Source: Macrostomum lignano (Eukaryota). Taken from it: a stretch of 64,000 bases of DNA. The DNA lies in the NCBI GenBank assembly GCA_002269645.1, contig NIVC01001856.1:62001-126000 (forward strand), in the 5' to 3' direction. Below the pieces are notes generated by a model. The model saw only the letters and a program-made list of their open reading frames with translations, did not search any database and had not been told where the DNA came from. Of this stretch, positions 24,053 through 30,889 are shown one piece after another; within the stretch, counting starts at the first letter, position 1; the number at the start of each line of letters is the position of its first letter. Position numbers and translations under genes: made by a program.

Positions 24053-24414
24053 TCAGCAAGTGGTCACGACCATGACGCAGCCGCCGTCTGCGCTGCCGGC
24101 ACTTCGGCAGCCGCCCGATCGCTTCCTAGCCCTCAGCGGCTGCTCTGCATCATTTCTCTCCCTAGAGCCGTCGGGCTCCGCTTCCTCTGCACCACCGCCG
24201 CCGCTGCCGCCACCGCCGCCGCCGCTGCCCGCGTCGCCCCGGCACAGATAGCGCACTATCTGGATTAGCAAATCCATGATCTCCACAATCCAGATCAGCG
24301 TCACGCCGATCCACATCGAGAACAGGCCTCCAACCTGGCTCAGCGTGCTGGGCAGGGTGCGCACCGCCTTTTCCTCGAACACCTTCACCATGTGGTCCTT
24401 CTTGGCGATCTTCA
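24053..24414 (-). pseudogene. Detached 3' end of the DEG/ENaC gene (duplicated TM2 segment plus the original C-terminus)
   Basis: Translates [13 protein letters not shown]...TM2...QPLRARKRSGGCRSAGSADGGCVMVVTTC*. Bases 24127-24414 are identical to 29215-29502. Confidence 0.85.
24127..24414 (+). repeat. 288-bp direct repeat, left copy (putative target-site duplication)
   Basis: TAGCCCTCAGCGG...GGCGATCTTCA, identical by eye to 29215-29502 and directly abutting the LINE 5' end. Confidence 0.95.
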
Positions 24415-24463
24415 ATCGTCAATTCCCGCGGCCGGGGGTCCGTCAATCCCCCAACCCTCCAAC

Positions 24464-25303
24464 ATGGAGGTTGATTCTGCCGCGAATCCCGCGGAAACCC
24501 CCACACCTCGCTCAGGTGCGTCCACCTCTACCCCCGCTACAGGGGCGTCTCAAAATGACGGCTTCCAGGTCGTCAACCGTCGCAGGCGCGATGATAAAAC
24601 CTCGGCTGGCTCTGAGCGGAAAAGGCAGCAGCCAGACGAGCGTACCGACCCCTCGCTGGACCCCAAGAGGCCAAAGGAGGCCAATGCTGGCACGTACGCC
24701 AAAGTGGCGACGGAGCCGAAATTTAAAATCTGCGTGCGCGCGGCTAGCGGTACGCTGACCACCGCCCAGATGGAAGCATCAATCGGCATGATTGATGACT
24801 TCCTCTGGGAAAACGACGCCCTCGACATCAAAGTCGAGGCGATTCGAAACGCCAACGGCAGCGTCATCCTCGCCTTCAAGGACGAAGCCCAGCTCGAGCT
24901 CGCGCTGGCTAACCTGGTGTCCATCTCCTGGGACACCTGCACGACCGCCCTCCCGCCTTTGGTCGTTGAGCGTGCCCGACCACCGCCGCCCTGCAGGCGC
25001 TACCGAGCCTTCTACTCCGGCTCGAGAAGCATCGAGGAGATCCGCGCCCGGCTCCTCAGTAAAAACCCCAACCTACCTCAGGACGGTATCCGGGCCTTCA
25101 AGGAGGTTCCGGCAAAAGGCGCTCCCGGCAAGACCCTGTACATGGGTTTCTCCGCGGAGTGGGAAGACGCCCTCAAGAAGGACGATTTTGCCGCCTACAT
25201 CGGAGCGTGGAAGATCGTCTTCCACCTGCTGCTCAGGCGTCGTCCAGCCGGCGATCGGCGCCGAGGTGAGTCCGTGAGCTCGGATAGCTCTGGGAACGAG
25301 TAA
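24464..25303 (+). CDS. LINE ORF1 (gag-like, 279 aa, no CCHC knuckle)
   Basis: ATG at 24464 in good context (AACATGG). Basic/low-complexity N-terminus. The TAA stop overlaps the ORF2 ATG (TAATG). Confidence 0.85.
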
Positions 25304-28300: not shown

Positions 28301-29121
28301 TCCAGGAAAGTCTGCACCTCGGTGAGAACACCTCAGTTTTCCAAGCTGAAATTTGCGCCATTGAGCAGTGTGCCCAGCAACTGTTTCAGGCGAACATTAA
28401 TAATTTTGACATTAATTTCTACACTGATAGCCAAGCTGCTATTAAGGCCTTAACCACTGAGAATATCTCCGCTGCTACAGTATCTCAATGCCACCGCAGT
28501 GTGCAATCTCTCTCAGTCCTTAACAGGATTAGAATTATCTGGACACCTGGTCACAGCAACATCCTGGGCAACGAGCTCGCGGACTCTCTCGCCAAGGAGG
28601 GCAGCAACCCAGACGGCAACCACCGTCTGATGAGGCTACCCACCCCCAGGTCGCAAGTCACCCGCCATATCAACAGGTGGCTCCATCAGCAGCACCAGCT
28701 CCACTGGAACAGCTGCACCGAGTACAGGCAGAGCCGCTCTGCCATGCCTAACCTGAACAGGAAAGTCTCTGATTATCTGATTTCGCTTAACAGAACCGAC
28801 CTCAGGGAGATGTGCATGGTCCTAACCGGCCACGGATTCTTCCAGAGACATATATCGTTGCAAACCGGTTGCCCTCCCACCTGTCCCTTCTGTGGCATAG
28901 GAGAGGAGACCGCGGAGCATCACGTCACCTTCTGCCCTTACTTCAACAAGGCGCGGCACAAATACCTCGGCCACCCCCAGCGGATGGACGAGCTGACCAC
29001 CGCGGACAATATCCGAGACCTCCGCGCCTTCGTCCGGGACTCCGGCCGGATGAGGGTCGCCGATGCCTCCACTGCGGACCTGCCGACTACTGGCGGGGAC
29101 TGGGCGCACCCCCAAGGCTAA
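25303..29121 (+). CDS. LINE ORF2 polyprotein, 1272 aa: AP endonuclease, reverse transcriptase, RNase H, C-terminal CCHC
   Basis: APE: QINLHH, LIQEPY, CDANAH, IDLTL, SDH. RT: [31 protein letters not shown]. RNase H: [43 protein letters not shown] at the C-terminus. Confidence 0.98.
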
Positions 29122-29191
29122 TCCTTGTGCTCTTTTACCTTGGGGTTGCGATAGGGGCCTCGCGGCCTATTCGCGGCGCCTGCGCCCCCCG

Positions 29192-30889
29192 TCAGTAGTA
29201 AGTAAGTAAGTAAGTAGCCCTCAGCGGCTGCTCTGCATCATTTCTCTCCCTAGAGCCGTCGGGCTCCGCTTCCTCTGCACCACCGCCGCCGCTGCCGCCA
29301 CCGCCGCCGCCGCTGCCCGCGTCGCCCCGGCACAGATAGCGCACTATCTGGATTAGCAAATCCATGATCTCCACAATCCAGATCAGCGTCACGCCGATCC
29401 ACATCGAGAACAGGCCTCCAACCTGGCTCAGCGTGCTGGGCAGGGTGCGCACCGCCTTTTCCTCGAACACCTTCACCATGTGGTCCTTCTTGGCGATCTT
29501 CACCGTGAGGAAGCTGCGGCTGATCAAGCTGTCCTCGTGCAGCGCCGCCGCGGCGCCCGGCTCGCCTCTTTTCAGCGCCTTCTTGATATTGGCGTAGTGT
29601 TGGACAATCTCTTTGTAGTGACCGCCCCTGCCGCGCTCGCTATGGCTGAGCATGCCGGCAAAGTCCAGGTGGAACGAGTGCCTCGGCCAGCCGGCCTGGG
29701 ACACGATGGTCTCGTAGGTGTAGTGAAAGCACGGCTCCCCGCACTGGCCCGTGCTGTTGTGCGCGATGCCGTTGTAGCATCGGGACGCCTTGGCCGCCCG
29801 GTTCAACTGGTCGGCGGTGATGTTCGCGACGCTGCCGAACGCCTCGCAAGGCCGGAGATCCCGGCTGGCCAGGCCTGGTGGCTCCGGCAGGGTGGCTGTG
29901 TAGCAGCCGCACTTGGCCACGATGGTGGCCTGCTTGCTCAGGCTGTCGCACAGGCGCGAGCTGTAGGCGAACTCCTCCCCGGAGGCCACGCGCAGTCTGG
30001 CGGGCACCTCGCCGCTGCACTGGCCCCAGGGCGGCTCCAGCCGATGCCAGGCATTTGGCACAATCTTCACCTCGGTGAAGGTGCCCGGCATGACGTTGAA
30101 GCCGTCCTTGCTGATGTCCGGGTAGGAGCCCTGCTCGTGCAGCACCAGCCGAGCGCCCCAGGCCAGCGTGTTGACGTCCACCATGAGACAGTCGATACAG
30201 TAGCTCTCGTTTGCTGAGTAGTCCAAGAACACCTGCATCTCCGTATAGATCACCTTGCTGGCGTACTCCGGCCTGATGTTGTACATGTAACAGTTCAGAT
30301 GGTCGGGGTGGTCGATGCGCCGCCACTCTCCGATCTCGTGACAAAGGATGTGGCCGACCGGCGGCTCTTCGTTGGGTTTGAGGACCACGGCGAAGCACTT
30401 GGTGACCAGCTGGTTGATGCTGTGGCCCAGCTCCGTGTAGTTGAAGTCCTTGTCGGGCAGATTGTACCAATAGTGCAGGTGATTCAGCAGGCTGTTCTTG
30501 TACGGGTCCATGGTGCCGTTGCTGGTGGCCGAGATCAGCCTGAGCAGGGCGCGCCAGTACTGCCTGGGCGTTGGCCAGCCGCGCTCCCTGATAACCTCCC
30601 GGCCCCGCCGAGACAGCGGGTTCTGATTGCACAGCGTGAAGCTCGGGAACGTGGCGCTTTGGTCCAGCCGACTTTTCGGCTGCTGAATGGTGTCAAACTG
30701 CAGGTACTGGCGCACGATCTCGTGCAGGTTGACCAGGCAGCCGATGAACAGGCCGGAGACGCAGACCAGCCACATGATTCTGATCCAGCCTTTGGCGCGG
30801 ACAATCTGCGGAATGCCCCGCAGCGAGGTGCGCATAGCGAAGCTGACAAAGATCTGGCGCATGCCGCCCGGCCGCCTGGCCTGACCCAT
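29192..30889 (-). CDS. Intronless DEG/ENaC (FaNaC/ASIC superfamily) ion channel, 565 aa, C-terminus now supplied by the LINE tail
   Basis: TSLRGIP pre-TM1, WLVCV TM1, FPSFTLCNQNP, NCYMYN, GARLVLHEQGSYP, Cys-rich thumb (CDSL..CGC..CY..C.EPC), QAGWP, TM2 [21 protein letters not shown]. The last residues TYLLTYY* come from the antisense LINE tail. Confidence 0.92.
   Translation of the reverse strand: MGQARRPGGMRQIFVSFAMRTSLRGIPQIVRAKGWIRIMWLVCVSGLFIGCLVNLHEIVRQYLQFDTIQQPKSRLDQSATFPSFTLCNQNPLSRRGREVIRERGWPTPRQYWRALLRLISATSNGTMDPYKNSLLNHLHYWYNLPDKDFNYTELGHSINQLVTKCFAVVLKPNEEPPVGHILCHEIGEWRRIDHPDHLNCYMYNIRPEYASKVIYTEMQVFLDYSANESYCIDCLMVDVNTLAWGARLVLHEQGSYPDISKDGFNVMPGTFTEVKIVPNAWHRLEPPWGQCSGEVPARLRVASGEEFAYSSRLCDSLSKQATIVAKCGCYTATLPEPPGLASRDLRPCEAFGSVANITADQLNRAAKASRCYNGIAHNSTGQCGEPCFHYTYETIVSQAGWPRHSFHLDFAGMLSHSERGRGGHYKEIVQHYANIKKALKRGEPGAAAALHEDSLISRSFLTVKIAKKDHMVKVFEEKAVRTLPSTLSQVGGLFSMWIGVTLIWIVEIMDLLIQIVRYLCRGDAGSGGGGGGSGGGGAEEAEPDGSRERNDAEQPLRATYLLTYY
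29215..29502 (+). repeat. 288-bp direct repeat, right copy (putative target-site duplication)
   Basis: Begins immediately after the (GTAA)n tail and is identical to 24127-24414. Confidence 0.95.

Follow-up and report, generated by a model that had tools for sequence, protein, structure and literature searches.

A LINE copy in a channel gene of Macrostomum lignano is flanked by a 288-bp target-site duplication, probably the product of a sporadic long-stagger insertion

Why should a long interspersed nuclear element (LINE) in the genome of the flatworm Macrostomum lignano be flanked by two identical direct repeats of 288 bp, and does such a length belong to a single insertion or to a whole family of elements? 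The question was raised by a stretch of 64,000 nucleotides (GenBank assembly GCA_002269645.1, contig NIVC01001856.1, positions 62,001 to 126,000 of the forward strand), which is called the window below and to which all coordinates refer. The repeats are a true target-site duplication of host sequence around a retrotransposed LINE. With good confidence, although short of certainty, the duplication is attributed here to a sporadic event of target-primed reverse transcription (TPRT) with a long stagger between the two strand breaks, by which a young LINE recently inserted a copy of itself into the 3' coding end of a gene of the DEG/ENaC (amiloride-sensitive sodium channel) family.

The two repeats (24127-24414 and 29215-29502) were compared by repeat finding and string comparison and proved to be direct repeats identical at 288 out of 288 positions. 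Self-BLAST of the whole window returned hundreds of matches, all of which, except two pairs, lay within or between tandem minisatellite arrays. The 288-bp pair was the sole non-tandem pair displaying 100 % identity in the 64 kb, and chance can therefore be excluded as its origin. A first-pass annotation, made by reading the sequence alone, had described identical direct repeats abutting both ends of the LINE, and this was confirmed at the 5' end as well as at the tail. The left repeat ends at 24414 and the LINE copy begins at 24415; the right repeat begins directly 3' of the tail GTA(GTAA)4GTA, and its first two bases, TA (29215-29216), are equally assignable to the end of that tail. As TA is common to target and tail, the length of the duplication is given as 286-288 bp, with a microhomology of two nt at the 3' junction.

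The repeated segment is host coding sequence. On the minus strand, a single-exon open reading frame (ORF) matched positions 1-454 out of 455 of the Pfam profile ASC (PF00858, E=2.1e-52), as expected from a full-length channel with two transmembrane segments, and the duplicated 288 bp encode its second transmembrane segment (TM2) and most of its cytoplasmic tail. Each copy is continuous with its native flank, the right one with the gene body and the left one with the last 24 codons and the stop. Positions 408-454 of the profile were matched twice at the locus and once in the intact ORF; since the profile has one TM2 per protein, the single-copy segment represents the ancestral state. The earlier description of the repeats as a target-site duplication at a retrotransposed LINE thus stood, both copies of this host sequence running into native gene flanks. 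The closest relatives of the channel were M. lignano paralogues with 27-29 % identity. The gene at 29192-30889 is full-length according to Pfam yet lacked a close match among 5.8 billion proteins, and it appears to be missing from both published annotations of M. lignano.

The effect of the insertion on the channel gene can be read directly. The present ORF crosses the right copy, continues into the antisense LINE tail for seven codons and ends in ...RATYLLTYY followed by a stop. The last 24 codons and the 3' untranslated region (UTR) of the channel are lost, cut off by a LINE inserted in antisense orientation. It had been suggested that an element of this kind duplicates its target rather than disrupting it. 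That suggestion has to be abandoned, as the channel loses the same 24 codons and 3' UTR that it would lose with a short duplication; had only a short duplication arisen from this first nick, the channel protein would have been no different. What the long duplication adds is only a promoterless orphan fragment of TM2 and C-terminus beyond the LINE (24053-24414). It is plausible that recombination between the repeats could revert the insertion.

Between the repeats, the LINE copy displayed two ORFs. No Pfam domain was detected in ORF1. ORF2 displayed, in this order, an apurinic/apyrimidinic-type (APE-type) endonuclease (Exo_endo_phos_2, residues 135-251, E=5.5e-22), a reverse transcriptase (RVT_1, residues 527-779, E=2.5e-30) and an RNase H (RNase_H, residues 973-1101, E=5.5e-13), together with a C-terminal Cys/His motif. 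The sole repeats flanking the LINE are those of host gene sequence, and terminal repeats belonging to the element were not present. An Rfam scan of 23500-31500 for a 5' ribozyme or any other RNA gave only one sub-threshold match resembling a small nucleolar RNA. The order of endonuclease and reverse transcriptase, the simple-repeat tail, the 5' truncation (see below) and the flanking duplication identify the element as an APE-type retrotransposon without long terminal repeats (non-LTR), that is, a LINE. Its domain architecture suggests a grouping with the I-like, RNase H-bearing LINEs of APE type. The labels R1DM and jockey found on distant ORF2 matches are automatic source names.

Other M. 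lignano copies of the LINE were compared as protein gene models from UniProt and UniRef. The best matches of ORF2 were dozens of M. lignano UniRef proteins with 95-100 % identity, one of them reaching 100 % in its best local alignment. With this degree of identity the family appears young and is probably active; the number of matches also suggests that it is abundant. The absence of any difference between the two repeat copies fits a young family. At least 15 other copies extend 5' of the residues '...SIPAAGG' with FFHFSLLCMDKSKPPDTAREP, upstream of which the host sequence differed in each model; in the window copy, host sequence runs to ...LGDLQS and is followed directly by SIPAAGG.... The 5' end of the family thus lies 21 codons (63 nt) or more beyond that of the window copy, which shows a 5' truncation, as is typical of TPRT, of at least this length. 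An in-frame upstream ATG (MDKSK...) lies within the stretch absent from the window copy and several models start there; ORF1 of the other copies begins with MDKSKPP..., 28 codons upstream of the first ATG remaining in the window copy. The description of the element as intact in the first-pass annotation has to be corrected accordingly, since at least 63 nt of the family 5' end and the upstream ATG of ORF1 are lacking.

The same comparison disposed of a 5' or 3' transduction, in which the 288 bp would travel as part of the element. Upstream of the 5' junction, at least 15 other copies carry FFHFSLLCMDKSKPPDTAREP in place of the 288 bp. The segment thus does not belong to the element, and both repeats are continuous with the native gene. 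Transduction had been named beforehand as an outcome speaking against a target-site duplication, and it was ruled out. Equally ruled out was a pre-existing tandem duplication with the LINE inserted exactly at its joint, which would require a coincidence to the base.

Several further observations were made on the family. At about residues 23-31, ORF1 of the window copy displayed nine additional residues (TSTPATGAS) relative to most other copies (...RSGAS/QNDG...), which looks like a family polymorphism caused by a 27-nt tandem duplication or deletion. Among the UniProt entries of M. lignano, dozens (P0004-P0060) bear the names of host domains (GPCR, C-type lectin, thioredoxin, MARVEL, protein kinase, RRM and others) and are chimeras containing large parts of ORF1 and ORF2; the UniProt proteome annotation of this species is contaminated by the LINE. 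In its first unit the (GTAA)n tail provides a consensus 5' splice site, and three gene models (among P0008, P0011, P0035, P0009 and P0026) exit the LINE at ...CCCCCCGTCAGTA/GTAAGT. Two gene models join full-length copies directly after 'FFHFS', whose back-translation is a pyrimidine-rich stretch ending in AG. Judging from these protein models, LINE copies in sense orientation may be spliced or trans-spliced as exons.

The structure of the locus is consistent with the following course of events. The bottom strand would have been nicked at 24126-24129, in 5'-...GGGCTA/GGAAGC-3' (the slash marks the nick), and the nicked ...TA-3' end would have paired with UA of the RNA tail and primed cDNA synthesis. 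Reverse transcription would have halted at least 63 nt before the 5' end of the RNA. The top strand would have been broken 286-288 bp downstream, or possibly 294 bp downstream, after which six nt would have been lost and AT added. The segment would then have been duplicated when the two long single-stranded stretches were filled in. The empty site expected before insertion would read ...CGCTTCC-TAGCCC...(288 bp)...ATCTTCA-CCGTGAGG..., with the segment present once.

Some points weigh against a long-stagger insertion. Its 5' junction is not clean, as two bases, AT (24415-24416), are left unexplained; they may be filler. The observation rests on one LINE copy at one assembled locus. Finally, no paralogous empty site was found, the best match of the channel in a collection of 5.8 billion proteins displaying 29 % identity.

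An assembly artefact was considered, in which the true locus would be a LINE with a short duplication, or a heterozygous insertion, and the assembler would have doubled 288 bp of flank. The perfect identity of the two copies and the abundance of minisatellites in the window would fit such an error, as would the M. lignano genome being repeat-rich and partly duplicated. The junctions, however, display the fine structure of real retrotransposition (microhomology with the tail, 5' truncation and a 2-nt filler), what was duplicated is unique coding sequence rather than a repeat likely to confuse an assembler, and a structure of 5.4 kb is normally spanned by single long reads. An artefact was consequently regarded as very improbable. 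Unequal crossing-over between two same-orientation LINE insertions situated 288 bp apart, on two alleles or homeologues, would formally yield the same final structure, and an abundant and young family would be a suitable source of them. It demands two insertions in the same orientation within 288 bp followed by recombination, and neither junction displayed a trace of separate short duplications; this alternative is scarcely credible.

If the duplication is real, is its length then peculiar to this insertion or a habit of the family? In the latter case the lineage would regularly break the second strand hundreds of bp away, and most of its copies would be flanked by long and perhaps variable duplications; a possible cause would be an endonuclease that requires a top-strand motif and uses the nearest one. 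The one duplication seen is long, none within the family contradicts it, and family-wide long duplications have precedents in R9 and Dualen-4b. The sample is nevertheless a single copy. The known families with long duplications possess a restriction-like endonuclease (RLE; R9) or this enzyme plus APE (Dualen), whereas only APE was found here.

Relatives and further copies gave some indications on this point. Relatives whose ORF2 was 31-36 % identical over more than 85 % of its length displayed the same architecture with an ORF1 of DUF4780 type; in contrast to relatives L004 and L005, no DUF4780 domain was detectable in ORF1 of the window copy. Their tails are built of short units in tandem, L005 ending in (ATCGTAA)3 and both L007 and L008 in (TAA)n. 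L004 to L006 are essentially bare elements with little flank and L008 is a nested insertion, so that L007 is the sole relative with readable flanks. Its identity to the window element is 33 %, and its duplication is clear and of ordinary size (11-13 bp), which speaks against long duplications as a habit of the family. A closer relative was L009, a LINE fragment from an ENA metagenome (ERZ28573520, scaffold_643652, 1-1308) with 63 % protein identity to the M. lignano element, presumably originating from a related flatworm. Its 3' end, ...CGCCCCCCGTCAGTAGTAAGTAAGT / ...CCCCCCGTCAGTAGTAAGTAAGT, is the same as the end of the 3' UTR and the (GTAA)n tail of the window copy; as they are common to a 63 %-identical element, the tail and the 3' boundary are properties of the lineage.

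Within M. lignano, nine chimeric gene models in which host sequence flanks a LINE copy on either side were searched for host peptides present in both flanks, by BLASTP in the same frame and by a codon-compatibility scan in shifted frames. None exceeded shuffled controls in any sense frame, which counts against a family-wide habit, though weakly because the models are spliced. Neither a copy of the LINE nor a repeat shared with the window was present in about 77 kb of Mlig_3_7 DNA around three channel paralogues (L001-L003), and exact-protein look-up of ORF2, the channel ORF and gene model P0008 in the contig collection returned no record.

A sequence motif at the insertion site deserves separate mention. 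AGGAAGC occurs at seven unique sites on both strands of the window, and two of these bracket the duplicated segment in inverted orientation, one exactly at the first nick and the other outside it, six nt past the duplication end. A second cut that depended on the motif would leave such a pattern, which argues, post hoc, for a family property. When 288-bp segments of the window were drawn at random, 0.66 % were bracketed by an inverted 7-mer of this kind, in a test that was designed after the motif had been seen. AGGAAGC may be a cleavage motif of the LINE endonuclease. Were the pairing real, the endonuclease would have cut both strands at similar motifs, and the 5' junction would have lost six nt and gained AT. 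It is decidedly doubtful that an APE-only family habitually cuts the second strand at the next opposite-strand motif resembling A/GGAAGC and so leaves variable duplications, often of hundreds of bp. If it did, it would be the first animal LINE with APE alone to behave in this way, and its insertions would be flanked by recombination-competent direct repeats able to excise precisely.

Taken as a whole, a family-wide property was judged unlikely, because sporadic cases at a few per cent are known and constitutive ones only in two lineages, both equipped with a restriction-like endonuclease; sporadic long duplications are documented at that rate in ordinary families, which leaves the family-wide property a low prior. 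Provided that the duplication is real, a sporadic event in a family with normally short duplications would be the cause in about four cases out of five, and a sporadic long-stagger insertion is the reading retained here.

Table 1. Features of the LINE insertion and its target gene, in window coordinates.
Feature	Position	Strand	Evidence or remark
Former 3' end of the channel ORF, last 24 codons and stop (RKRSGGCRSAGSADGGCVMVVTTC and stop)	24053..24126	-	minus-strand ORF 24053..24415 in frame from left copy to stop
AGGAAGC at the first nick, 5'-...CTA/GGAAGC-3'	24121..24127	-	motif scan
Left target-site duplication copy	24127..24414		288/288 against 29215-29502; minus-strand translation corresponds to Pfam ASC profile positions 408-454 of 455
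LINE copy, 4800 bp	24415..29214	+	sequence between the repeats; two ORFs, tail, Pfam domains
ORF1, 279 residues from first remaining ATG	24464..25303	+	ORF list
ORF2, 1272 residues	25303..29121	+	Exo_endo_phos_2, RVT_1, RNase_H (Pfam)
Single-exon DEG/ENaC ORF, 565 residues in present state	29192..30889	-	Pfam ASC
3' tail GTA(GTAA)4GTA	29195..29216	+	last TA (29215-29216) common to target
Right target-site duplication copy, contiguous with channel gene body	29215..29502		288/288 against left copy
AGGAAGC, 6 nt beyond duplication end, inverted partner of first-nick motif	29508..29514	+	motif scan

The remainder of the window is rich in tandem repeats. Minisatellite arrays with periods of 4-72 bp and lengths of 0.3-1.7 kb each were encountered throughout 1054-62226 (for example 10153-11516, 18795-19856, 20634-22279, 39134-40857 and 44092-45577). 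Host genes lie between them, namely a TRPM-like channel, an aldehyde dehydrogenase, an FHA-domain protein, a G protein-coupled receptor (GPCR) and a C-type lectin. One 22-bp array is present twice, at 18.8-19.9 kb and 20.6-22.3 kb, and two related (GTCT)n arrays lie at 15.7-16.6 kb and 61.7-62.2 kb. A satellite array of 7 kb (47627-54636) is composed of about 52 copies of a 134-bp unit with 99 % identity and a strong skew of A over T; it ends beside a GPCR-like ORF (54580-55248, minus strand). A dispersed pair of 270-bp repeats (5608-5878 and 46774-47048) displayed 89 % identity and is probably a short interspersed element.

The cutting of the second strand and the priming on it are the least understood step of LINE integration, and long natural duplications are rare records of where the second break fell. 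The present locus is unusually clean in this respect, being young, with identical repeats, a unique coding target and both junctions readable, and it could serve as the starting point for a genome-wide survey of M. lignano, a flatworm model in which transgenesis is available. A literature search for LINE duplications in this species found none.

In its general organization the element resembles I-factor-like LINEs (I/R1/LOA/Jockey group), with which it shares two ORFs, the order of endonuclease, reverse transcriptase and RNase H, the C-terminal Cys/His motif and a tandem-repeat tail in place of poly(A). Duplications in the I-like group are typically about 10-20 bp long. Longer ones are known from R9 of bdelloid rotifers, a member of the R2 group that is specific for 28S ribosomal DNA, carries a restriction-like endonuclease and duplicates the same 126 bp at every insertion. 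R9 and the window copy are both non-LTR retrotransposons flanked by an exceptionally long duplication; they differ in that only an APE-type endonuclease was found here, the target is a protein-coding DEG/ENaC gene, the duplication is 288 bp long and the insertion is a single one. The first-pass annotation had taken duplications of hundreds of bp to be exceptional for TPRT, in agreement with papers that call more than 20 bp 'long' and with the quotation of the 126 bp of R9 as the previous record (Gladyshev & Arkhipova 2009, cited in PMC9977147).

De novo insertions of Dualen-4b_cRei in Chlamydomonas reinhardtii displayed a median duplication of 900 bp and exceeded 50 bp in more than half of the cases; Dualen elements combine RLE and APE endonucleases, which the authors invoked to account for the long stagger (Lopez-Cortegano et al. 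2023, PMC9977147). The insertion described here likewise is that of a LINE flanked by a duplication of hundreds of bp, although its host is an animal and not a green alga, and only APE, reverse transcriptase and RNase H were found by Pfam. An experimental parallel is provided by zebrafish ZfL2-2 in wild-type chicken DT40 cells, where one out of 25 insertions was accompanied by a duplication of 1228 bp against a background of at most 20 bp (Suzuki et al. 2009, PMC2666801). Both are APE-type LINEs with a TPRT-type insertion and a single duplication of hundreds of bp or more; ZfL2-2 was, however, an engineered element of the L2 clade in cultured cells, whereas the LINE described here carries RNase H and inserted naturally into the germline of a flatworm. 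This single event is one more example beside R9, Dualen and the experimental L2 and L1 systems: not a new kind of system, but a clean natural example of a documented phenomenon in a new host and a new clade.

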